Source: Wallemia ichthyophaga EXF-994 (lineage: Eukaryota > Fungi > Basidiomycota). Taken from it: 32,000 bases of DNA. Below, one piece after another: positions 6,932-30,500 of the stretch. The stretch is from positions 145,280-177,279 of the forward strand of contig NW_008806275.1 in NCBI RefSeq assembly GCF_000400465.1, given 5' to 3'. Position 1 is the first letter of the stretch, and every line of letters begins with the position of its first letter. Both the position numbers and the translations under genes were made by a program. The notes under the pieces were generated by a model. It had not been told where the DNA came from. It worked only from the letters and a program-made list of their open reading frames with translations, and made no database searches.

Positions 6932-7476
6932 TGAATCCAGAGTGTTTAATAAATCATAAGAAGAGAAAGATTCCTTATCCTATACAAGAGCTGTTAGCGC
7001 ATGCTCTAATCAGGAATTGCTATGTCAACCAAAACTCGCGTTTGACATTGACAGCTTCCGCTAAATTGCCTGTCTCACATTTTGTAAACTTAAAATTGTC
7101 TTGTAGAACTTCTTAAATTGCTCAAATGATTCTAACTCGTTCATCCGTGTTGTTATTATGTAGAGAGAGATATAATTTCAAGTCCGTTGTCGTTGTGTTG
7201 TGTGTTTGGCGAGCTTGCGGGGCTATTTAGAGCTTGATGCGCTGAATTAAATTAAACTGTGAAGTAAGTGATCAAGCTTGTAAATAATTCAATTTAAATA
7301 ATATCTCCATCTTCATTCCAACCCTCATTCATAACTCGCTGAGCTCGTACTAAAAGCACACGCCAAGTAATATTCAAACATACCTAACAAGATGATATTC
7401 AAAAACATTCAAATACTTTGGTAATTGCGTACGTGAAAATCATATTCATCTTTATTAAAATCTTTTAAAGTTCATT

Positions 7477-10400
7477 CTACGCCGACTTCTTCTCTAATCT
7501 GCGCTTCTCCCTTCTCTCACTAAATATCACGTTACTGTTAGCACTTCCTACATTCCTCGGAAGAAAATATCAACTCACGATCCTCTTGTCACTAACTCCG
7601 GTGGGTTGAGGTTAGCAAATAGTTTTTTACATCCTATTTCTACTGCATAACAAAGCGTAAAGTCGAGGACCATAGATCCACACAATCTAAGTTGGAATCC
7701 GTACGTCATCTCCACTATCTGCAACCATCTGTTCATCTCTGGTATGAAGTCTGTTGCTCCGCAGAATGAAACTGCACTGGCTCCCATTAATCCATAAAGC
7801 AATGGTGGATTTTCTCTCAGCGATTCTCTGAATGGTCTACCTTGATAGTTAATGGCGAATGTGCTGACTTGTTGCGACAATCCAAGAAGGTAAATCGCGG
7901 TATTCAATAACGTTGGCTTGAACTCCGCATCAAGGTCGATTGGACCGCGGCTATCATGAATGATTAGACTAAACGGATTCTATCACCTTCTTACTCACTT
8001 TTCCAATGTGTTTGAAAGGTCTGTAATGTAAACCATGAAGAATATGTGGATGGCGAATTGAAGCAAAACGGAGAGAAGTATGTAAAAGTTAAAGATGTTA
8101 GTTAAAGGTCTCTCCTTAGAGAGCTTCTCAATTGGCTGTTGTATTTGTCAGTATATTATCCTATTTCCATTTGCAATCTCACCTTGGCCTTGGATATACA
8201 TAAGAAACAAACAGACATGAGCATACCAGAGATAGTCAACTGGTAATCACCTGCTTTGATACCGTCGAGATACTGCACTGAGAGAGTATACGCGGTAATA
8301 AGGCAATTGAGAGCCAAGATCTTGTACATCTGTGTAGTAGCAACCAAAGTACATCTGCCCTGTCTGATAATATTGGCAATGGCACTAACATTGGAGAGCT
8401 TGCTAGTGAATGGAGCTGCGCAGCTGGCATCACCCAATTTGATCTGTGGTGGTTCGTTATCGTCCTCCATATCAGCCATTTTTTCAGTAATTTGAGACAT
8501 GTTGAATTGTTGTGGCTGGGTCTGAGTTTGTCTACTAACGCTGTGTTGAGCAGCTGCTGTTCTCTGTGCGTTGACCATGTCCGGATATAAATGAGCAATA
8601 GGCTTAGGTACCGGTGGAGGAGGCTGGTTGAACCTTTGAGAGAATTTCAGTTGCTGTTCGTAAACCTTCTTAAATCTATCAATCCTGGCGTGCTCTGCAA
8701 TCTTCTTCAAGTCGTCTTCCGTTCCTTGGAGGAGCGCAACACCGATTCTGGCTTGCTTAAGTGCACCAACGTCGTTAGTTCCATCTCCAGCCATCAGCGT
8801 GGTGTAGCCAAGTGATTTGAATGTAGTAAGAATTGATTCTTTTTGCGTAGGACTGACTCTGGCGTAAACCCATGTGTGCTGGATAAGTGCGTGCCAATTC
8901 TCTGTTTTCTTCTCTATTTGACGAAGTGCTGCACCTGTCATACAGATGTCGTGGTCTCTAAGAATTGTCTCGTTAATTGGCTGTGCAGGGTCGACTGGGA
9001 TGATTGTCTTTTCATCGACGGATCTGAGCATTCACATTAGTATTTGTAACGAGTTGAATATTGAAACGTACCTGAACACCAATTCGCTCTCATCTTTAGC
9101 ACCCTCAGCAACGTCAAGAATTAAAGCATCTCTGTCAACAATCTCAACGTCATTGGCAACGTGAAGAGCAGTGAGAGGGTTATCACCAGTAATCATGATG
9201 CTTCTGTGTGACGAATCGTTGAGCATCTTGAGAGTTGCGACAGCGTCAGGCTTAAGTGGACAATGGAAGACGAGGAAACCGGCAAAATGCAAATCAGACT
9301 CAACATCACTACGTTGGAGATTAGGTATCTTTACGACTAGTCAGCGCAATCAAACAAAAGCAAATTAAGATCTCACCTCGGTGTTGCTTGCTTTGATATC
9401 CTTCCAAGCTAAAGCAAGTACACGGCTACCTTTTCTTGTGAACCACTTGTAAGTTTCTTCATAACCTTGTGGGAGATCTTTGATCATACTCTTGATAGTT
9501 TCAGGGGCACCCTTCACGCTAACAAAGGTACGCTTCTGACCTTGGCCATCGACAATGTTGTTGACAGTGGACATTCTCTTTAAAGCAGAGCTGAATTGGA
9601 ATTTTCTTCTAATGTTGATAACGTGCTTGTGGTTAGCTGACTTGTTGGCAGGGGCCACTGTGTCAGCTTTGCCCAACTTCCAATCCAAGGCTTCGAGAGT
9701 GGTTTTCTCCATAGGATCACCAACAACGTCGCCCTCATCGAGCAGTACCAAAGCGTGTGATGAGGCGAGCGTCAAAGTGGTTTCCTTAGGCGTGGTTTGT
9801 AGTGGTAACAAATCTTTTGGATCTTTTGCGATTCCGGCAACACCTTCAACTACCAAATCCTCTCCTGTGATGGTACCAGTCTTGTCGAAACAACACACAT
9901 CAACTCTACCTGCAAAAGGAATTCTAAAAGGCTCTGTGCAGAAGATGGCGAATTTGGACAAAGCAACTAATGAAGCGTTGACAGCTAGTGAAAGTTCCAT
10001 TGGCAATTCAGGTGGGACAACAGAGGTGATGATCAAGATGCAATCCAAAATAAGCTTACTTTTCTTAAGACCACGTTCGTTTCCTTTAATCCATACATAT
10101 GCTGAAGCGGCGATGGCGAAAATGAGCAAGAATCCAATAAAGAGGAAGCTCTCCAAGTTGTTAGCAGAGACCTTTTCAGAAGAAAATAACATAGTACGGA
10201 TGAGTTGACCTTGGGAAGTACCGAAGCCAGTCTTAAGGACGATAGCTAATGCCTTACCATCTGGAGTTAGTAGACCATTGTGAGCCGAAACATCTTCAGG
10301 AGATGGAGGGTTGGTTTGGAGCACCTTGGTACCACCGAATAGAACATGAAGGTTTTTATCGTTGCCGTCGACATCAGAGACTTCATCGTCAGATCTAGAC

Positions 10401-11335
10401 TCAATTGATTCTTTTAGTAGGGGAGTTGATTCACCGGACAGCATCGCTTCGTTAACAATTGCGGAGCCTCTAAGTAAGAGAAGATCACATGGGAGAGCGA
10501 GGCTTTCACCAGTGCGATCTATAGAGACGACGTCACCTGGAACTAGCTCTTCAGAGCTGAGATTGACCCATTTTGAGTTTCTGTAAACGGGCATAGTGTA
10601 AGGAGAGATGGACATTGTTCTGAATTCGTTGAGGGTTCTGAGACGTTGCCAAACGACAGTACATTCAAAGACGACCAACATGAAGCCTGTGAAGAGGGAG
10701 TACCAGAAGTATTCATCCATGCACCATAAAGCGACGCAGAACATTTGAAAAACGAAGAAAGGAGCGACGGCATGTTCAGCGAAGAGTGATAAAAAGGTTG
10801 GAACGGGGATGTTGTAGATGTTTTTACCGAATTTTTCGACCAAGTTATCAACTTGACTTGTCGATAAGCCATTAGAGTGCTTGAAAGTAGAAAGGGAAGG
10901 TTTATCATCGCAAGGGAAGGGCAAGCGAGTGAAAGCCTCACCATTGTAGATATACTTATCAGATTGGTAAATAAAGTGAAAAGTTTTGTTGTGATGATAT
11001 AAAGTAACTAATTCAGGTTCACCGCGATGTTCAACGGGGTTAACGCATACTAAAGAAGCAGATTGTAAGTTATTTGCTTTATAACATTCAGTGAGTGTAC
11101 GCCATGACATTCCCCATCTGCCACCTAACCAACATAAAGCTTGACCACCGAAAACGAATAAGCAAGCCATCAAGGAATATTCCTCTGAAACAAGATAATA
11201 CTCATATTCAAAGTAATAAGCGTAGAATAAGAAAGGGTAGAAAGCGAACCATAAGAAGTAAATACGTAAGAAGATTGGTAGACTGTTATGTAAGCTTATG
11301 CTTGAAATTGATTGAGAATTAATTTTAACTGCCAT
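7477..11335 (-). CDS. SPF1: P5A-type ATPase (Spf1/ATP13A1), 1,202 aa, 6 exons
   Basis: Motifs present: SGES (A domain), the P5A TM4 signature VPPELPMEL, phosphorylation site DKTGT, KGAPE, ITGDN and GDGTND. Introns at 9376-9329, 9071-9024, 8182-8136, 7998-7951 and 7578-7520 give one open frame from the ATG at 11335 to a TAG ending at 7477 (…TRGSERREKRRLEKKSA*). Confidence 0.96.
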
Positions 11336-11410
11336 CGCTCGATTTATAGATTTTGTTGATGGCAGCAAACTTCAAAGGGAATTTGGCTTCCTTCTTCAAT
11401 AAAAACATCG
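11336..11410. promoter_or_regulatory. 75-bp divergent intergenic region between the SPF1 ATG and the next gene (candidate bidirectional promoter)
   Basis: Head-to-head ATGs at 11335 (-) and 11411 (+). Promoter function is inferred, not shown. Confidence 0.5.
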
Positions 11411-14069: not shown

Positions 14070-17000
14070 CTACTTCCTCCGACTTGCTTGCCCCGCTTTC
14101 GGCGTCGTGATACGCGGTGCCGCTAGATTCCTTCTCCCCACACCCAGCCGAGCAGCGCTCTCTGTCGGCTTGGCTGATGTGCACGTCACCACCGATTGTG
14201 ATGGATTGAAACCCGAGTTCATATTCGCTGTACCTACTAAACTCTTTTCATGCGACGCTGTGAGATATGCGTGACTGCCGTGCATTTTTGGCGACTGCGA
14301 CTGCGACTGCGACGGCGGCGGTGGTGGTGGCGGTGGGTGTAATCCAATCTGCCCAATCTGCCCACTCTGTGCACATGTCGGCGACGAAGGCGCGGATGTC
14401 CCAATAGACGACGAGCTGGTCGCGTACGACGAGCGCGTCAGACTTGGTTCCCGTCTCTGGATCACCCCATTGAGGGAAGTGGAAGAGGTAGATCGCGTTG
14501 AAGCATCCACTTCACGTCCACCAACCTCGCTATCTTGACACCTCGCTTGTGTCGTCGCATTGTCGTCTTCCATCTCCTCCTCTGTCTCCTCACCGCCGCT
14601 GCTTGACGGGAAGGCGGTGTCGTAGCAATCGTCGCATGCCCGCGATGGCTGATGCTCGCCTGCTTCATTCACGATGAGGAAATTCTGCGGCGACTCGTAA
14701 GCGCCAATGTCTAGGCTAAACACTCCTCCCACTCACCCTCGTTGAACACTCATGGCACACTACATGTCCACACATCCTGCAATGGTGCTTCCGTCTCATC
14801 CAGTTAAACGGCTCCGAGCAGCTCATGCACACAACTGCCTTGCTGTCGGGCACCCACACCGGCGCTGCGTAATGCTCGAGTACCCTCAGCTTGGTCTCTG
14901 AGGGATTCGAGTGTGAGTGTGAGTTGGCATAAGACTGAGAGGGCGTGAGTATTGACCCATCTGCCCGCTCTTCCTTCTCTCCTTCTCCTTGTCCTTCTTT
15001 TTCTTTAGCCTGCTTTTTCCAGCGCAGCCCATTCACTATCGCTGTAGCGGCTGCAGCTGCTGAAATATCGCCCGTCAAAGCGCTGCGTGTCCTCTCTCGT
15101 GGCCGCGCTTTTGACTGCGATGTAGGCACTTCTGCATATGCATGCACTGATCTCCTGCGCTGCCTGTGCGATCCATTCTCATCAGCCAGTTTGCTAGTCG
15201 GCGTACTGTGTCCTGAAAACGGCGTGGAGAACGACAGCGCAGGCGAGTTCAATGTCCTTTTAACTGTCGTGTTGGTCGAATTTCCTTTGCGCCTGATGTA
15301 CGTGTCCGGGTCTAATGGGAACTGGTTGTCGTCTATCTTGAGCGTACGGAAAGCTGACAAGTACTCATCTTTTGTTGACCTAATCGCATTCAGCCACGCG
15401 TTCCGCTCTTCTTCTGATTCCGCGTAGATACTGAACGACTTTTCTGAAGATATTACTTGTATCGTCCTCCCGTGCAGCTGCGGATAGTCATTGTCAATAG
15501 CAACGACTGTCACATCTTCTAGATCAAGCTTCCTGTTGAAAGTGAAACACTGCCCCTTGAGAGTGCCAATATCAATTGGTCCTACTAGACGTGGTGGCGT
15601 TGAGACAGATGGGACACCATCCTCCTCATTCGTCACAGACGCTGATAAAGAGTGTGGTTGGGTTATCATATTCACTGGCAATGATGCTGAGTGCTTGTGT
15701 CCTCTTCGACCTGCACTTTTTACTTGCGGTCTTTCTGCAGTAGCGGGAGAAGCAGGAAATGCTAACGATGACAACCTGTGCGAAGAGTTGTGCTTGCTGC
15801 TTGAGCGCAGTGGTGGCGCACTCCCGAATGGTGAGTTTTTGAACTCCGTAATAGATGGCGTGCTCGGTGGACTTGTCGGATTGACAACATTCATAACCGA
15901 ACCTACGCTTGAACAAGTAGGCGAAGCATAAATGAGGCAATCGTTGAGCAGAAAGAATGCCTTCACTTCCTCCTTCTTCCTTCCAATTTTGACCAGCCAG
16001 CCTGATTTGATGTGTGTGCGACCGGGTGCTACAATTGGGAAGGGCACACCGAATATACTTTTTTGTAATGTGAGCAATGACATAGTGTGTTGGTATTGAG
16101 CAATATGAGTTTCGAAGGTATTTGCAACTGCGAGTATATTAGAAGTGCCTTTAACATAAACATCCACCCACCATCTGAGACCAGCCTCAATGCGCGCTGC
16201 AAGTTGACAAACTCCTCTTTCGCTTCGTCGGTATATTTGAGAATCTGAGAAATTAACAACTTGTACCTAGGTACACGTTGTACAATAGCGAGTAACTTCG
16301 AATTGAGACCCAGTCGTGTCCATTCGAAGCCGCCTTGGCCTGTATCGACTATGGTATATTGTGCATTCCGTATAAATGAACCAAATTCAGGTTTTGCTCG
16401 CTGCAATTTGTTCAACTGCTGCTGACTATTTTCAAAGTTGCGAATGAAAGGTGTGTATAGCTTAAGGAAAGGAACGAGATTGAGAAGACTCGGTGCGAGT
16501 TGGATACTGGCACGTGTTTTAAGGTAGCTATCTCTATGACTGTTGTTATCGGTGCTCGACCAAGACGGGGAAGCTGGATGTATGGCTTCAGCGACTGTGG
16601 TCGACGCGTTCAAAGAGTTGAACGTGGTAACTGTCGTTGCGTTGGTAACGGTTGTAGTCTGAGCAGGTATAGGTGGTAATCCGGGTAATACTGCGCATTC
16701 TAAGCTGCGCAAGAGTTCTTTGTTGGTGTTGAGAATGTGTTGAAAGTGGGGAAAAAGTTGAGACAAAAGCAAATCATCCCCCGATTGCTTCAGGGGCTGA
16801 ATGAAAAAGTTCCAAATGAGATCCAAATCCTTGACGTAAGACCTCTCAGTCTCTAAAAGCTCAAGAATAGCACGCCACCTTTTTTCGACACGTTCTTTCT
16901 TGTATGAGGTATATTTGCTCTGTTCTGAGTGCCTCCTATGATGCTTGTGGGGTTGTGGGTGTTGTAAAGACTGGGAGGGAAACGAGTACTGCTGTGGCTT

Positions 17001-17180
17001 GAAGTTAGCTTGCTCGCCTTCAGGCAGACTCTCAAAAGAACGCGTCGAGCACGACGAAGTCCTGTTCTTAGACTTGTACTGAGAGGGTATATAGATTCTC
17101 GAGTACACGTTCGACGGTGGCAATGGACGCGACGAGCTCGAAGGGCTTGACGGCTTGGTGTCTTCCCAGCGGCGGTCCAT
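14070..17180 (-). CDS. FGD/frabin-like RhoGEF (DH-PH-FYVE), 1,004 aa, 3 exons
   Basis: DH motifs ELLETERSYVKDL, FLKLYTPF and VQRVPRYKLL. PH motifs KSGWLVK…FLLNDCLIY and AESEEERNAWLNAI. FYVE motifs WVPD…CMSC…RRKHHCRMCGHVVCHEC…RACDDCY. Introns 16171-16128 and 14736-14685 join three track ORFs in frame. Confidence 0.92.
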
Positions 17181-17496
17181 AGATTTTTGCAAATTGATAT
17201 CTCGTGGTGATGATCCAAAGCTAGGGTTAGAAGATCTCAGCTAGATTCGACTCAGTTTTTTTTTAGTTTTATTTGGTGTGTCCAAAAAGGGAAGGAGGAT
17301 AATCAACGCGCGTGGCTACAGCTGAGCAGGTGTATTGTACTCCTCTAGTGCCCATCCCCCAGAAAATTTGATCGTCTTGTTGATTGATAATCTACAAAAC
17401 AACATCGGTATGAAGATAATCATCTTCATGATGAAACCCATTCGATGTCCGCCGAATTAGGTTTAATCGCTCAAACTTGATTTTGCGTGTCTCTGA

Positions 17497-19024: not shown

Positions 19025-19999
19025 ATGGAGGCACTGCAATCTATCTCAAGCGGATTCAACGCGTTCAACGCAAGCTCGCTCATCCCTCAAGCAGAGGTGC
19101 AAGGCGAGGACTTGTACACCGGGTACGACCTGAGTCAGCACAACTTGCTGGAGAGAGCGTGGGCTAGCTGGTATATTTGGTGGGGAAATCCGGTAATAGC
19201 CACGGGCGTAATGAGTTTCCTGATGCACGAGGTGTGTATGCCGTTAGCGCGTCTTCTATGCTAAGTTGTACAGGTAATTTACTTTGGACGATCTATTCCG
19301 TGGATTATAATCGACCACATTCCTTACTTCAGGAAGTGGAAGCTGCAACCACACAAGGTGCCCTCAGACTGGGACCAGTGGCGTTGCACGTACTTGGTGC
19401 TTTTGCAGCACTTCACAATAGAGTTGCCACAGATCTGGGGATTCCACCCGCTGGCTGAGTTTTTCGGTATGCAGACGTACCAGCTGCCCTTCCCATCCCT
19501 CTGGACAATGGCTAAACAGATAGCAATCTTCTTTGTGTTTGAAGATACCTGGCACTTTGTCTTCCACAGGGCGCTGCACTGGGGTCCTCTGTACAAGCGT
19601 ATCCACAAGCAGCACCACGAATTCAGTGCGCCGTTTGGACTCGCGGCCGAATACGCGCATCCCGTTGAAGTTGGATTGACCGGTTTCGGCACAGTCGGAG
19701 CACCAATCCTCTACGCGGCATTTATAGGCGAAATACATATAGTGGCGGTGTACGTGTGGATCGCTTGTCGCTTATTCCAGGCGATAGACTCCCACTCGGG
19801 CTACCACTTCCCTTGGTCCCTGTGCAACTTCCTGCCAATCTGGGCCGGCGCTGAACACCACGACTACCACCACGAGAAGTTCACTGAGTGCTACGCTTCG
19901 AGCTTCAGGCATTGGGATTGGCTCTTTGGGACGGATAAGAAGTACCACGCATACAGAGCAAAGCAGGCAGCAGCGAAACGTGATAAGAAAGCACAGTAA
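19025..19999 (+). CDS. ERG25: C-4 methylsterol oxidase, 310 aa, 2 exons
   Basis: Three His boxes: HRALH, HKQHH and HHDYHH. Also HHEFSAPFGLAAEYAHP, SFLMHE|VIYFGRSIPW and QAIDSHSGY. Intron 19232-19273 (42 nt). Confidence 0.95.
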
Positions 20000-20095
20000 A
20001 ACGATTAAATTTCTTGTATAGAATATAATTACTATAAACATCTAGCATCTAATTTCCCCTGTGTCTCTCGCAGCGTGTCTTGCTCACCGACGATC

Positions 20096-23000
20096 ATGAG
20101 TCTGGCTGCGAACAGAACAAGGCGGAAGACAGCGGCCACGGAATTGCCGACGGAACGAAATGGAGATATCGGCGCTACCCGTGGGTTCCTGGGTTTCCCG
20201 CCGCACCGCGAAACATGCTAATCACATAACAGCAACAAGCACAAAGAAGCCAAAGGACAAACAGCGACGAGCGAAAGCTAAGAGAATCTCTATGCACGAC
20301 GTAGATTTATCTGGGTTCGCTTCATCGTCTCCTGCGCCGACTCAGCTGAGAAAGTCGATTGTCGAGCAGCGTGTGCCGATTTCCACGCTGGCGCAACGGG
20401 CAAAGATACTCAAAACACTGTCACAGGATGTTTTGAGCCAGGTACTCGATCCAATCACTGGGACAAACGACATCTCCGTTCTCAAGACATGGCATACGTA
20501 TCAAACGTTTAAACACAACACTTTTACCGAAAATAACTTTATTTCTGTTTCTCAAGTTCTCAGCGGACAAAGGCCCAGCTCAGATACTGCGCGTGCAATC
20601 ACTCAAGGCGTTAGAATGTCCAATATTACTACTTTTGCTGCAATTGTCCAGCAACAGCAAACAACTATCGAAACTGGTGGCGCAATTTCTCCCGCTGTTG
20701 ATCTCAAAGAGGCTTGGGCGGCGTTCCTTGGCCACGTTGTCCCCACTGACTCCAAGCTGCGTAAGATACACATGGACTATCAGATAGATCTAGCAACCCA
20801 AGTCTACAACATCAACCAGCTCAAGGTGCAACACATGCAAAGAATCAGACCTGTAAGCGCTATGGTACAAACAGAGGCCGTCAAAGAGGCTGTTCACGAG
20901 CTCTTTAACTGGAAAGGCACTGTCTGGAATAACAGGGTGGATGCCTCAAGATTATCAACTCAGCTGCAAGCACATTTCGAGAAACTGGCGAAGGAGCGCA
21001 TGATGGTCTTGCGTATCCCTGTAGACAGACTTGATCACGAGTTCCCGTATGAGAAGTTCAAGGGGAGTGTGATGAACTTTGCTCAGCAAGTTTGGGACGA
21101 TATATACAACGATGCAAATCACACTACAGACAGAACAATTTTCGAAGACGATAGATCGACTGGTCTGGGAAGGTCATCTCAGCAGAATCTAAGCCAGGTG
21201 CAGCAAAAAACTCCAAAGCAAAGCCAGATGCAAACTCCGAGAAGGAAAACTACTCTACAGAAAACTCCACAGACTGGGACTAGGAAGAGTCCTCGACAGA
21301 TTACACAGCAACTTGAGCAATCTCCTCAGCAGATTCAACAGCAAAGGCAGTTTAGTCCACAGCAATTTCAACAAACCCTTCAACAAACCTCTCTGTCAAA
21401 TCTACAAACTCCAGATACTCCTCCGATGCCGCAACTGTCTCCAACCCACGTCGATCGCAGCCTGCAACAAGAGATCGATCTCATCAATCTGGATGTGGAC
21501 AAGCACACCGATACCGTTAATGACAGCATCTTCGGTGAACATTTTGAGTGAGTTGGGTTATCTTAAGAAATATTAACTAACAAATACAGCCAAACCATAT
21601 CGAGCTTCTCCAACATTTTTGATGAACCACCTCAAGGCGAATCTACGCTCTATTTGCAAAGTACTCCGGACAGGCGTAGACAGCAAGGGTCTGTCCGTCT
21701 GGAAGATAGATCGCGATCGCCTATCAGTGGAAGAGACATCGATCTCGATCAGCTCCTCAACCATCAACACCACATCAGCAGCGACGCTTTTATCAATGCA
21801 TCCAATGTGTTTACACAATCAGAAGCAAGTGCAAATGCGAATGCAAATGTAAACACTTCGCAAGAAACCGCTCACCGTCATTTAAGGAGTGCTCGCGACA
21901 GCGTTGTGCGTAGTATGGCAGACCACATCCCACCATCATCGCAAGATCAGCAGGGAATGCGTTCTTCATTGCTTCCGCCATCTAACCAGAAAGAAAAGGA
22001 GAAGGAAATTGGACTGAGAGCATCGTTGCAGAATGAAAGCGCGACTGATTTTAATGGCGTGGCTCTTTCGTTTAGACGGCGGTCGCCAGTAGTTGAAGCG
22101 CGAGAGCAGGCTTCAGCAGATGTGCCAATGAACATTGACAATGATACTCCGACAGATGAATCCCTTAGATTGAGGGAGGGGGCTACTGAGAAACATGAAG
22201 AGACCAATAGACTTAGACAGGAAGCTGAATCTATTAGACTGAAAGAGGAAGAAGCTAACAGGCTGAGCCAAGAGGCTAAGGCTAAAGAGCAACAAGAAGC
22301 TGAAGCTAGAAAGCAGCAAGAAGATGAAGCTGTCAGACATAGACAAGAGACCGAGGCTAGAAGACTGCAAGAGGAAGATGATACCAGAAAGAAACTAAAC
22401 GAAGAGGAGGAAAACAGAAAGAGGCTTGAGGAGGAAAGTGATAAAAGAAGGCTGGATGAAGAGACCAATATTAGACTTGAGGACGAGCATAGAAGAAAAT
22501 TTGAGGCAGAGAATAGAGAGAGACAAGAGGATCAGACTAGAAAGAGGCAAAAAGAAGCTGAGCAGCAACATTTAACGAATGAGAGAGCTGAGGCTGCTGC
22601 TGAAAAAGAGAGACAAAGCCTAGCCTCCGACTCTGCACTCGAAGTGGAGCGTTTACATCGGGAAGAGCAGGCGCGAAACATGCTTTTAGCTCAAAAATCT
22701 CAATCAGACAGGATCCCCAGTGCTTCAACACCCTCAGAAGGGCCTGAAAGGTTATCTCAACAAATCTCTGAGCAACTACCTCAATCACCTCGACAAACAT
22801 CCGAGGAACTATATCAAGGAATATCTCAGCAGTTATATCAAACTATGTCTCACGATCCTCAGTCAGCGTGGATCTCAAATTATTCGGCTCCGCTGGAGGT
22901 AATTGAGGAGCCACAGCAACAATCTTCTCAGCATCCAACTCAGCAAACGTCTCAAGAGCCGGATGAGCAACTATACCAACAACTGGATCAACAACTTTCC

Positions 23001-25456
23001 CACCAAATGTCCGATCAACTATCATCTGTGCAGCCTTTCCAGCAACCAACTCAATCAACCGAACCAACTCAACGGTCTCCACGATCTCCACAAACCCAAC
23101 CAACCCAACAATTTCAACCGTCTCCACAAAATAAACCAGTTCAACAAACTCCACAAACTCAACAGTCTCCATCCACAAGTTCCACACACCCTTATAATAC
23201 TGCGCAACCCGTAAAAGCCAATTCAACTTCGGTAGATGTTAATGAGGAGGAAACTGTGGACAATAACGTCAAGGAAATCATGAAGGAGCCATTTGTAGCT
23301 CAACCACAAAGAAGAGTCGAAGACGATCTATTGAATCACTTGGATCTACTACCTGACCACTCAGATAACGACAAAGTAGATGACGCAAATGATGTTGACT
23401 CGGACAATCGTAGTTTTAGTAGGCAGGAGTCTGTAATCAGCTGGGCAGGTGACGATGAAGAGCAGGTGAATTCGAGAAGAAGCGCAGATGGTGGATCGCG
23501 TATTATTCATCGGAAGGGTGTGAGAGTTAGCCGTGAAGTGGAATCACATAGACGCACAATTAGAGAGAACAGACAGAAGGCGTTTGACTCTGACGACTCT
23601 GACGAAGATGGACCGCCCGGTAATCAGCAGAGCTTGGTGCCACCTCATCCTCTTGATGTTGACATGGGCGATCAGGATGAAGATGATCTTGAGCTTATGT
23701 CTAGCCAATTAGAGACTAAGGTTCTAGAAATACCTAGCAGTATGGTTGAGATCAACAAGGATGTTATTGTCCTGTCTAGTGATGATGAAGATGAAGATGA
23801 GGGTAACCAGGGTGGTTCGAAGATGCCTCCTCAAACAGTCAATCCTCGCACTCGCACTAGCGCTTCCTCTCACAGTGGCACTCCTCCTCCAAACCAGCCA
23901 AGTCAACAAAGAAATTCCTCTTTATTCGACTCGAATCAATTTCAACAAATTCATATCAGCCTTCCATTGACTCATCTGACACCTCCACCAACTCCACATA
24001 TTCCACGTTCGCGTTCCAGTGGCCCTACTGCCAATCGCGTGTATGATACCATCAATAGAGAAAGGTTTAGACGCACTGACGATAATGGCTACTACCAAGA
24101 CGAGAACCAAATCGGGGAAGAAAGAGTCGAAAGTGATAAATTAAGCCAGAGCGATGACGAGTGGAATATGGATGATGAGGTACCTGAGAAGCGTTTACGA
24201 ATGTCTAATAAGGCACGTAATCTCAGAAGATCTAATCTAGGTATGATTGACGAGGCTAAAAGAATGCAGAATAAACGCCATAGACACCACCTGAGGCAAG
24301 CAAAGCCACGTGATCTTCTACCCAATGGTCGAAGGATTAAGAGAAAGACAAGGCCTTATGAAGAAGAGTTGATCATACGTGGGTATTCTGCGTTTCATCA
24401 CAAAACCCTGCTGACGTTATTGCGCAATAGGCTACATGGTTAACAGATATCGTCTCGAAAGATGGAAGTTCAACAACAATACAGCAGAATATGCAGATGT
24501 CGACAAAAGTCAATTTCGCTACGTCACTGTGCCCTATAAGTGTTATGCGCAGATGGTCATCGACCATGGGTATCGCGGCAACTTCAGTCAGACACTTTCA
24601 GAAAGAAATAAGTGAGTATCATATTGAATTTGTCGCTATACTGACAATTTAAAGCATTGATATTAAAGATATCGTCCGGAAGTACAATGAACGGCATCTA
24701 AGGAACGGTAGAAAGCTTCACCCGGCGCTGCGCAAGACGACGGGCACATACAAAGCAAATTGGGATACCGATTTCTTGCAAGACACTGATCTGGAAGACG
24801 AACGGGAAAAAGACTTTGTTTCTGAGAGGCAATTAGCACAAGATGTGATAGATCTTTACCCGCAAGTAATTGACGAGGGACTGAATATTCCTGATAGAGA
24901 TGCCGAAAATACTTCAGCAGTAGTGAGTCCGAGGTTAAGTGGTAAACGCCAACGCAAAGGAAAGAGCCAGAATCCAAGTAACGTAAAGCGTAGGCGTTTG
25001 AGTGAGTCTGGTGCAGCGGCAAATACATTGCACACTACAAATCCAGTTCAGCTAGATGGACAAAATAAGCCAAGTCAGGCAGTTCAGCCAGAGCAGTTGA
25101 ATCAGTTAGAGCACCCTTTTTTCTACGATAAGAATGCATTTGGATATGAAACTGAAGTTCCGCAGAGTGAGGATGGAGAAGTAGATGATGGGAATATGGA
25201 TCGAATAGAGAGGGATGGAGAAGAGAGGGAGGATAATGACGATCAACTACATGCAGCAAGTGAGAATGGAATACAACGGTTAGCAGCATCAGATGCTAAT
25301 GAATATGGACAAGATGAGAATGAAATTGGTCAGAACATAGAGCGGGGCATGTTAGAGGAAAATGAGATCCACCGAGTACCAGCGGCAGACGCAAGTCAAT
25401 TAGAAGCCACAGATCAACTCCAACTTGAAAGAGCAAATAAAGACGTAGAATGGTAG
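20096..25456 (+). CDS. 1,723-aa protein, 5 exons; putative diverged TRF/Tbf1-like telomere-repeat-binding factor (TRFH-like N-domain, long disordered/charged-helix linker, telobox-Myb-like domain)
   Basis: Introns 20181-20232, 21548-21589, 24379-24430 and 24612-24654 fuse three track ORFs into one 5,172-nt frame; the gene model is well supported. The domain call rests on remembered fungal Tbf1 motifs and is moderate confidence only (see findings). Confidence 0.75.
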
Positions 25457-27591: not shown

Positions 27592-30500
27592 ATGAATTCA
27601 TTCAGATTACGCAAAATTAAAAATCATCAAGACACAATGAATAGCCCACACGAAGACGAGCAGAGGTTGTTGGAGGAGCATAATCATAACGATGACGTTG
27701 ATAATGGCACACGCGATATAGACAGCCCTGATAGCCCTGATTTAAATGATTACCGAAGAGTTCCGTTAAACTCACATAAAAAACTCAAACATCCTCCAAA
27801 CAGCATTAGAAACCAGAAATACAACTTAATCACTTTCATTCCCCTCATTTTATACCAACAATTCAAATTTTTCTTCAATTTATACTTTTTATTGGTTGCT
27901 TTATCTCAGTTTATACCTCCGCTGAAAATTGGCTTCATTTCCACTTACATAGCTCCTTTAGCCTTTGTTTTGTTGGTTACCATATCAAAAGAGGCCTATG
28001 ATGATTATTTACGTCAAAAACGAGATAACGAAGTTAATTCTTCACTCTACACCACTCTAACTTCAATTGGTTCTCAATCAACTCCTTCATCATCTATTAA
28101 AGTCGGTGACTTACTATTCCTTGAAAAAAATCAACGCGTACCTGCTGATTTGGTCCTACTAAGGTGTACTGACTCTTCCGGTACTTGTTTCGTCAAAACT
28201 GATCAACTAGACGGTGAAACTGATTGGAAGCTGAAAGTCGCAATCCCTTCCACTCAATCTCTCCCCTCTGACTCTGACTTGCTCAACTTGAAGGCTGATT
28301 TACTCGCTGCTCCTCCCATCAAAGATATTCATTCTTTCAATGGCTCTTTACACCATCATGGATCTAGTCTCTTTCAACACGCACTCCCCGCTGAACCTCT
28401 CTCTGCGGAGAACTGCTTGTGGGCCAACACCGTTTTGGCCGCTGGTTCTGCTATCGGTGTGGTTGTCTATACTGGTAAAGAAACAAGGGCTGTGATGAAC
28501 ACTAGCAATCCTAAAACTAAAGTTGGTTTGCTCGACACCGAGATAAACAGACTAGCAAAGGTTTGTCAAAAGCCTGTCGTCATACAAGCACTAACTATTC
28601 TTTAGATCCTCTGTCTAGTCACTTTCCTACTATCTGTCGCCTTAGTAGCCTTGAACGGCTTCAGAGGCCAGTGGTTCGTCTACATATTCCGCTTCCTCAT
28701 TCTCTTCTCCTCCATCATTCCTATCAGTTTGCGTGTTAATTTAGACATGGGCAAAACAGTATACTCGAAGCAAATTATGAGAGATGCAAACATCCCAGGC
28801 ACAGTAGTGCGCACATCGACTCTCCCTGAAGAGCTTGGTCGTATTTCTTACCTCCTCAGCGACAAAACGGGTACACTCACACAGAATGAGATGATTATGC
28901 GCAAACTGCACATGGGTACTATGTCATACAGCAATGATTCGATGGACGAAGTGCGCTACCAGCTTGCAATGTGTTACGGGGCGCAAGACGACTATGGCTA
29001 TGGCGATAGTGATGAGACGAAAGCACCAACACTAGTCACAGGTATCCAGCTTGCAAATCGCGGGCGTCGCGACATGAGCTCGCGCGTAAAGGATGTAATT
29101 ATGGCTTTATCGCTGTGTCACAATGTCACACCCGTCACAAACGATGACGACACCGTATCATACCAAGCCTCTTCGCCTGACGAAGTAGCCATAGTGAACT
29201 GGACGGAAAGTATCGGTATGGCTCTCGTGCAGCGTGATCGTCAACGCATAACCCTGCGCACTCCCTCTGGGCTTCATATCTCGTATGACATTCTCCAACT
29301 GTTCCCATTCACTTCCGAGTCGAAGCGGATGGGAATCATCGTGCGTGACACCATCTCTGGCATAATCACATTTTACGAAAAAGGCGCAGACGTCGTCATG
29401 CTCCCGCGTGTCCAGCGTCAGGATTGGCTTGAGGAGGAGACGGGTAATATGGCGCGCGAGGGGCTGCGTACGTTGGTAGTGGCGCAGAAGGTACTCACTT
29501 CGAGCACATATGATGCGTTCGAGCAGGCTTACACGAGCGCTAAAGTTGGCGTAAGTATGGGTAGACTAGACGTAACACCTGAAAGTGTCGTCGATCAGCT
29601 CCTTGAACACGACCTAGAGCTTCTCGGTCTCACTGGTGTAGAAGACAAGCTGCAAGAGGATGTCAAGCCGACACTCGAACTGCTCCGCAATGCAGGGCTC
29701 AAAATATGGATGCTGACGGGTGACAAGATTGAGACAGCAACGTGCATTGCCATCTCGAGTAAACTCGTCTACCGCAATCAGTATATACACCAAATAGCCA
29801 AGGCTGGCTCTGTGCAGGAAATTAAAGATCACCTCGACTTCCTCCAGTCAAAACCAGATTCATGTCTCGTCATCGACGGTGATTCACTTAATGTGGGTGA
29901 GGTGTTTCTGTTTTGTACAGCGCTTATCATTTCCAGCTCTGTCTAAACAACCTCAAACCGGAATTCATACAGGTGGCAACGCAGCTATCTGTTGTCGTTG
30001 CTTGCAGATGCTCGCCTACGCAGAAAGCTGAAATCGCCAATCTCATCCGCTCGCACACCAGGCGGCGCGTGTGTTGTATAGGAGATGGTGGAAACGATGT
30101 TTCTATGATCCAAGCTGCAGATGTCGGTGTCGGTATCGTTGGCAAAGAAGGCAAACAGGCTTCACTAGCAGCTGACTTTTCGGTGATGCAGTTCTCTTTC
30201 CTCACTCGCTTGCTGGTGTGGCATGGCAGAAACTCGTACAAGCGCTCAGCGAAGCTGGCACAGTTCGTCATACATCGCGGTCTTATCATATCGATCATCC
30301 AGGCTGTCTTCAGTGCTATTATGTATTTCGCCCCTATCGCCATCTACCAGGGCTACCTGATGGTGGGATACTCAACAATTTACACTATGGCACCTGTCTT
30401 TTCACTCGTGTTGGACAGAGATGTTAATGAGGATCTGGCCCTTTTATATCCGGAGTTATACAAGGAGCTTACTAAGGGTCGCATACTATCGCTAAAGACC

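Follow-up and report, generated by a model that had tools for sequence, protein, structure and literature searches.

The closest described system is Trf2 of Ustilago maydis (UmTrf2), a TRF/TBF1-like protein of 1,528 amino acids (aa) in which some 600 aa of linker separate a TRFH domain from a Myb domain that contains insertions (Yu et al., PMC7744550). UmTrf2 is a telomere-protecting protein that binds TTAGGG repeats in duplex form and is evidently essential (PMC7744550); it also binds and inhibits Blm (PMC11670948). Trf2 homologues of 1.5 to 3 times the size of mammalian TRF proteins are found in Ustilaginomycotina and Pucciniomycotina (PMC7744550). A differently built fungal protein, Tay1, lacks a TRFH domain and carries a pair of consecutive Myb motifs close to its N-terminus (PMC7952879). 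The stretch investigated here, 32,000 nucleotides (nt) of Wallemia ichthyophaga contig NW_008806275.1 (the window), carries at positions 20096-25456 of the forward strand a gene for a protein of 1,723 aa. We consider it probable, at roughly 0.8, that this locus encodes the W. ichthyophaga orthologue of the TRF/Tbf1 family, of the long type known from UmTrf2. The gene is of an expected and known kind; it is a badly annotated and unusually diverged orthologue. The analysis itself speaks to domain homology and gene structure, and the proposals on function made below are drawn from what is described for the family.

The first line of evidence concerns the N-terminal domain and is transitive. A HMMER search with a two-species alignment of this domain against 1.84 billion representatives returned Wallemia fragments and five long proteins, the latter with E-values between 2.4e-6 and 3.4e-4; the family alignment in the homologue search retrieved Wallemia fragments only. 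Four of the five proteins were traced to basidiomycetes (Jaminaea rosea, Ceraceosorus, Kwoniella dendrophila and a Microbotryomycete, whose protein is annotated as a 'TTAGGG repeat binding factor'), and the fifth is P0007. The basidiomycete relatives measure 1,015-1,538 aa, and the identity between the Wallemia domain and that of its relatives is 19-22%. A hidden Markov model (HMM) built from the five relatives, with Wallemia left out, matches aa 67-319 of the W. ichthyophaga protein at 5.7e-23 and the W. mellicola orthologue at 7.8e-25, both E-values being calculated at a proteome-sized Z of 5000. When the eight-sequence family profile was compared with the PDB, it matched the helical domain of Schizosaccharomyces pombe Tbf1 (6k5s, 1.8e-4) and the N-terminal domain of Saccharomyces cerevisiae TBF1 (8x6e, 5.8e-3), with no third match below E=2.1. 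In the HMMER alignments the Wallemia MSNITTF falls opposite ANLAIF or ANLLTF, and AFLGHVVP...DLATQVY opposite NFLEVFAP...ELKTQAY. The AlphaFold2 model computed from the family alignment is all-helical, with a predicted local distance difference test score (pLDDT) of 67 and a predicted template modelling score (pTM) of 0.70; the model from a two-sequence alignment was unusable (pLDDT 41). Foldseek places five Tbf1 helical-domain entries, all of them 6k5s or 8x6e, at the top of the PDB for the family-based model, with probability 1.00 and template modelling (TM) scores of 0.48-0.59, and the sixth match drops to a TM score of 0.24. Together, the profile searches and the predicted fold argue that the N-terminal domain is homologous to the TRFH-type helical domain of Tbf1. 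The sequence-only reading of this stretch had noticed the segment SNITTF...ATQVY, which lies at aa 158-220 (20619-20807), and had likened it to the Tbf1/TRF dimerisation domain; the resemblance turns out to reflect real homology, significant through the intermediate sequences, and the structural comparison which that reading proposed for this domain leads to Tbf1 as well.

The second line of evidence concerns the C-terminus. A telobox-type Myb domain stands at the C-terminal end of all five relatives from outside Wallemia and is clearest in the Microbotryomycete protein (WTIAEE...YGPAGDVSQELRHRTVVSLKDKAVN). An HMM of the five relatives matches aa 1424-1484 of the W. ichthyophaga protein at 2.5e-6 and the W. 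mellicola orthologue at 5e-4 (again at Z=5000), and hhalign aligns a Wallemia-only profile with the Tbf1/Trf2 family profile at 94% probability and E=1.5e-7 over 53 columns. The seven-sequence family profile finds the Myb domains of TBF1 (8x6d, 5.8e-12) and of S. pombe Trf1/Tbf1 (5.8e-11) in the PDB. The W. ichthyophaga domain consists of a basic arm (RRIKRKTR), a first helix that is followed by an insertion of 22 aa, a second helix, the recognition helix NNIDIKDIVRKY and an extension, LRNGRKLHPALRKTTG. The alignment shows conservation of the patterns HG(Y/W)xGxxSQxL and R-x-N-(I/V)-D-I-K-D, as well as of the extension LxNGxKLHPAxRxTxG. Of the recognition helix, R, V/I, K, D and R are retained, as is LxxG(x)xLP...TG in the extension. 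In W. ichthyophaga, whose recognition helix reads R-NN-I-D-I-K-D-IV-R, the K, D and R remain, and the lysine at the third position is lost. As judged from these alignments, the protein has near its C-terminus a single predicted Myb domain of the telobox type with the C-terminal extension specific to Tbf1. Since the architecture is the same and three of the closest relatives come from Ustilaginomycotina or Pucciniomycotina, where the UmTrf2 paper reports close homologues, we place the Wallemia protein in the UmTrf2-type family. UmTrf2 itself (UniProt A0A0D1E1Z3) was compared by its published description, and the link at the sequence level runs through the homologues from Jaminaea, Ceraceosorus and the Microbotryomycete.

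Both domains are predicted to be encoded by one gene of five exons. Removing four introns unites three long open reading frames (ORFs) of 463, 929 and 226 aa, each in a different frame, into a coding sequence of 5,172 nt that has no internal stop and ends in the only stop codon. Each intron has a GTRRGT donor (GTGGGT or GTGAGT), a CTAAY or CTGAC branch site and a YAG or AAG acceptor. The same locus was available from W. mellicola (L002) and from a contig of a third Wallemia lineage, taken from a public read set (L001). The positions of all four introns recur in both, and the intron sequences have diverged while the flanking exons are conserved; in L001, removal of these four introns and one additional intron yields a single frame of 1,370 aa. 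W. ichthyophaga, W. mellicola and L001 likewise share their start codon together with the peptide MSLAANR(T/S/A)RRKTA. The four junction peptides are all present in an NCBI protein of W. ichthyophaga that was predicted independently (P0001), and the W. mellicola protein P0002 has the same internal junctions. The four introns proposed by the sequence-only reading are therefore borne out by an uninterrupted coding sequence and by their conservation, as is its observation that the C-terminal domain (aa 1381-1487), which introns 3 and 4 interrupt, becomes readable only after splicing.

P0001 and P0002 were the only two clusters that a full-length query retrieved. P0001 has 2,042 aa, is labelled 'hypothetical protein E3P91_00828' and is 98% identical over the full length; P0002 has 1,785 aa and is 34% identical to the W. 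ichthyophaga protein. The gene was thus less hidden than the sequence-only reading had assumed, given that public models exist, although these are labelled hypothetical and their N-termini are fused to the product of the upstream gene, a fatty-acid hydroxylase (PF04116), with a Zn2Cys6 protein also joined to the fusion in W. mellicola. If these models were right, the TRF gene would be part of a larger fusion; alternatively, the ORFs could be separate genes. A fusion is suggested by the short distance between hydroxylase and TRF gene (96 nt; region 19358-20096), and a weak intron candidate, GTAAAA...CTAAT...CAG at about 19995-20072, would bridge the stop codon of the hydroxylase. However, the hydroxylase ORF stops in both species (in W. 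ichthyophaga at 19997-19999, in frame upstream of the TRF gene start), and the short stretch between the two genes is not conserved and carries stops in W. mellicola, whereas the start codon and the peptide MSLAANRxRRK are conserved in three lineages. The more distant homologues (5/5 from outside Wallemia) have no PF04116 match in the Pfam scan. For these reasons we regard the fusion as a probable annotation artefact. The position-conserved introns, whose removal restores a single frame in each species, and the presence of TRFH and Myb domain in one chain throughout the family argue in turn against separate genes, and we consider it highly improbable that the gene model is wrong in either way. 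Conservation across species supports the predicted splicing into one five-exon gene that encodes both domains.

Two further observations concern introns of L001. The additional intron, of 50 nt (7202-7251 of that contig), lies in the TRFH-coding region between ...TWQTFE and TFKRNTF and is absent from W. ichthyophaga, which points to an intron gain or loss within Wallemia. Introns 1, 3 and 4 of L001 happen to be free of stops and in frame, so that prokaryote-style ORF callers read through them; P0005 and a call of 967 aa are proteins with spurious insertions that arose in this way.

Several observations weigh against the assignment to the TRF/Tbf1 family. The N-terminal domain of W. ichthyophaga has no match to Pfam TRF (PF08558), and what the Pfam scans of its domains report (DUF5946, InvH, Annexin) is noise; Pfam Myb models likewise find no match in the Wallemia C-terminal domain. 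Searches of PDB sequences with the Wallemia N-terminal domain by itself, as single sequence or as profile, gave no match, and for the C-terminal domain Tbf1 proteins rank first or close to first in the Wallemia-only searches, with non-significant E-values of 0.06-0.6. The AlphaFold2 model of the N-terminal domain is of moderate quality, and its root-mean-square deviation from Tbf1 is about 8 Å. In the Myb domain the match is limited to helices 2 and 3 and the extension, and helix 1 is assigned by position. The first tryptophan is replaced (there is an R in that column and a Y two residues further on), the insertion FNNNTAEYADVDKSQFRYVTVP at 24469-24534 separates helices 1 and 2, and in W. mellicola the arginine of K-D-x-x-R is a phenylalanine. 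The claim of the sequence-only reading that the C-terminal segment aligns with the Tbf1 telobox stands as to homology, and is narrower as to extent: helix 1, with its unconserved first tryptophan, lies outside the match. The Pfam scan that the same reading suggested gave nothing for W. ichthyophaga; for the W. mellicola orthologue, TRF (PF08558) is the top Pfam family at 17.1 bits and E=0.0045, below the gathering cut-off of 25 bits, which is a criterion of detection and not a defining property of the family. Several clear basidiomycete family members likewise miss this cut-off in the Pfam scan.

The deviations in the Myb domain could also mean that the domain is degenerate. In that case, the protein would have lost sequence-specific DNA binding and other factors would recruit it as a scaffold, or its specificity would have shifted. 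The lost first tryptophan, the 22-aa insertion, the change from KDKARN to KDIVRK in W. ichthyophaga and to KDYVFK in W. mellicola, and the silence of the Pfam Myb models on the Wallemia protein would all fit this explanation. However, Myb helices 2 and 3 and the extension rank with the best-conserved regions of the protein in the three Wallemia lineages, which indicates purifying selection; the K and D of the recognition helix are kept in all of them and the R in two of the three, and UmTrf2 binds TTAGGG even though its Myb domain also has insertions (PMC7744550). We therefore consider a degenerate Myb very unlikely. The insertion has a counterpart of similar length in L001; in W. mellicola it is missing at the DNA level, and the exon is continuous there.

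A related proposal is that the Wallemia Trf2/Tbf1 has been remodelled. A Myb domain that lost its first tryptophan, acquired 22 residues and changed KDKARN to KDIVRK or KDYVFK may have a different or relaxed sequence preference on DNA, or may need a partner. In addition, a probably helical stretch of about 180 residues, rich in E, R and K, could serve as a stiff spacer and so fix how far the DNA-binding heads lie from the dimer core. To our knowledge, a stiff charged-helix spacer is undescribed for any TRF protein. We regard this proposal as tentative and quite unlikely.

For a TRF/Tbf1-family orthologue of the UmTrf2 type, the family suggests the following mode of action. The helical domain would form a homodimer, and each Myb head would read one TTAGGG-type repeat by means of its basic N-terminal arm and of the recognition helix with its conserved K-D-x-x-R; the DNA-contact roles of these recognition-helix residues and of the arm are presumably those known from the TRF1-DNA structure. 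The long flexible linker would let the two Myb heads reach neighbouring repeats and may carry motifs for binding partners. The most likely role would be the coating of duplex telomere repeats and the protection of chromosome ends, similar to UmTrf2, which restrains Blm and Mre11; additional binding at interstitial TTAGGG sites, as for Tbf1, is conceivable. A literature search for the telomere repeat of Wallemia gave nothing usable.

The main alternative to end protection is a Tbf1-like role at interstitial sites. The protein would still be a family member, acting as a transcription or insulator factor on TTAGGG-like sites in interstitial and subtelomeric positions, and another protein, e.g., of the Tay1 type, would cap the telomeres. 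That the closest relatives in the PDB are Tbf1 proteins and not metazoan TRF1, TRF2 or Taz1 would agree with this, as would the mostly non-telomeric roles of Tbf1 (PMC7952879). However, UmTrf2, the sole tested member of the family in basidiomycetes with TTAGGG telomeres, is a telomere protector (PMC7744550, PMC11670948), and the origin of three of the closest relatives points to the UmTrf2 type as well. We consider the Tbf1-like role unlikely and retain telomere protection as the more probable function of the Wallemia protein.

The coordinates of the gene, of its domains and other elements and of the neighbouring genes are collected in Table 1.

Table 1. Exons, introns, domains and other elements of the TRF gene and neighbouring genes in the window; coordinates in brackets refer to L001.
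Feature	Position	Strand	Remarks
Exon 1	20096-20180	+	Start codon and N-terminal basic motif MSLAANRTRRKTA, kept in Wallemia (W. mellicola, L001)
Intron 1	20181-20232	+	52 nt; GTGGGT...GCTAATC...ACAG; position kept in L001 (6884-6931) and L002
Exon 2	20233-21547	+	Part of the spliced frame
Intron 2	21548-21589	+	42 nt; GTGAGT...TAACTAAC...ACAG; position kept in L001 (8093-8137) and L002
Exon 3	21590-24378	+	Codes for most of the poorly conserved low-complexity linker (about 1,060 aa)
Intron 3	24379-24430	+	52 nt; GTGGGT...CTGCTGAC...AATAG; after LIIR also in L001 (10399-10443) and L002
Exon 4	24431-24611	+	End of Myb helix 1, insertion, helix 2
Intron 4	24612-24654	+	43 nt; GTGAGT...TACTGAC...TAAAG; before (I/V)DIKD also in L001 (10625-10666) and L002
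Exon 5	24655-25456	+	Myb recognition helix, extension, NLS-like sequence, acidic non-conserved tail; stop 25454-25456
Predicted all-helical Tbf1-type TRFH-like domain	20346-21104	+	aa 67-319; motifs MSNITTF, AWAAFLGHVVP, DLATQVY
Wallemia-only conserved linker block	21405-21842	+	aa 420-551, across intron 2; motifs QEIDLINLD, FDEPPQGESTLYL, LLNHQHHIS
Strongly charged E/R/K-rich segment	22152-22694	+	aa 655-835; E 26%, R 18% in aa 701-800
SUMO-interaction-motif-like element DVIVLSSDDEDEDE	23760-23801	+	aa 1191-1204; pattern match
Predicted Tbf1-type telobox Myb domain and C-terminal extension	24330-24745	+	aa 1381-1487; split by introns 3 and 4
P5A-type ATPase	9365-11368	-	Neighbouring gene
RhoGEF-PH-FYVE protein	14716-17192	-	Neighbouring gene
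P4 phospholipid flippase (P4-ATPase)	27592-28605	+	Neighbouring gene

A conservation map over the three species shows conserved blocks at aa 1-32, 46-317, 420-551 and 1374-1509. The remaining 60% or so of the protein evolves fast and is of low complexity, Q- and P-rich and acidic, with the E/R/K-rich stretch in addition, and the linker is mostly disordered. The N-terminal motif, the block at aa 420-551 and the acidic region around the SUMO-interaction motif (SIM) have no significant match in the other basidiomycete homologues, and we treat them as specific to the lineage for this reason; the block at aa 420-551 may be a docking site for a lineage-specific partner. Stretches comparable to the E/R/K-rich one, about 180 aa long, are found in the other two Wallemia orthologues and not in the other basidiomycete homologues. 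It probably forms a long helix or coiled coil, possibly a spacer made of a single alpha-helix. The SIM-like element is kept in W. mellicola (EIIEISSESDDE) and in L001 (QLIVLTSDEDE), and from this pattern we infer that it might function in SUMO interaction.

Smaller features accompany these elements. A 24-nt tandem repeat (22269-22331) lies within the E/R/K-rich stretch. Imperfect tandem repeats of 9 nt and 36 nt (23043-23163) code for a P/Q/T-rich, QPTQ-like part of the linker that probably varies in length between strains. Upstream of the SIM-like element, an acidic motif, AFDSDDSDED (23580-23609), is common to all three Wallemia orthologues; similar strings of the form (R/K)xFD(S/E)-acidic-FL occur in the proteins of Jaminaea and Ceraceosorus and in P0007, a match without statistical support. 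The acidic C-terminal tail, otherwise unconserved, contains a sequence resembling a bipartite nuclear localisation signal (NLS), KRQRKGKSQNPSNVKRRRL, at 24944-25000.

RhoGEF/FYVE gene, fatty-acid hydroxylase gene, TRF gene and P4-ATPase gene follow one another in the window, and this gene order is the same in three Wallemia genomes: in L001 the TRF gene is preceded by the RhoGEF and FYVE domains and followed by the flippase, and in L002 the RhoGEF precedes it. The 32,000-nt window contains no tRNA genes and no arrays of telomere repeats.

With this gene the Wallemiomycetes, an early-branching class of extremely xerophilic or halophilic basidiomycetes, gain a candidate for a duplex telomere-binding protein; at present the gene bears the label 'hypothetical', and its public model wrongly joins it to a lipid hydroxylase. 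The UmTrf2-type family is extended to a lineage too diverged for Pfam, an example of how fast fungal telomere proteins evolve, as discussed in the literature, and the natural variants of the telobox recognition helix provide material on what the recognition of TTAGGG truly requires. The current picture of telomere biology is unchanged.

Among the known systems, the Wallemia protein differs in build from the Tay1/Teb1 family, whose members are likewise fungal TTAGGG binders built on Myb domains; an identity with Tay1/Teb1 was rejected because the protein has one C-terminal Myb-like region and a TRFH-like N-terminal domain. Metazoan TRF1 and TRF2 and S. pombe Taz1 have the same architecture, a helical dimerisation domain and a C-terminal telobox Myb. 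No PDB sequence or fold search with the family profiles or with the model of the N-terminal domain matched them, and the relationship to these proteins is therefore taken from the literature, at the level of a superfamily.

Yeast Tbf1 provides the only solved structures that both the family profiles and the fold search match, namely those from S. pombe (named Trf1 in the PDB; 6k5s for the helical domain, 6k5u and 8ynu for the Myb) and from S. cerevisiae (8x6e for the N-terminal domain, 8x6d for the Myb). The Wallemia protein and yeast Tbf1 have in common the motifs NLxTF, FLxxxxP and (E/D)LxTQ(A/V)Y in the helical domain, and YGPGG/HGYRG, LxxRxxVxLKDxxR and the extension LKSGxxLP...TG in the Myb. 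However, yeast Tbf1 is much shorter, has short linkers and acts largely away from telomeres, and unlike that of W. ichthyophaga its Myb lacks an insertion between helices 1 and 2 and keeps all tryptophans.

The closest overall correspondence is that with UmTrf2, which the sequence-only reading had named as a basidiomycete example of the TRF architecture and whose published description fits the comparison. In Wallemia the helical domain begins near the N-terminus (aa 67), and in UmTrf2 it follows an N-terminal extension of about 415 aa; the linker is about 1,060 aa long in Wallemia, where it includes the E/R/K-rich stretch, and about 600 aa in UmTrf2; and the first tryptophan of the Myb is lost in Wallemia. 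Nevertheless, both are very long basidiomycete proteins (1,723 and 1,528 aa), and in both a TRFH-type domain is connected by a linker of hundreds of residues to a single C-terminal Myb domain that bears lineage-specific insertions.

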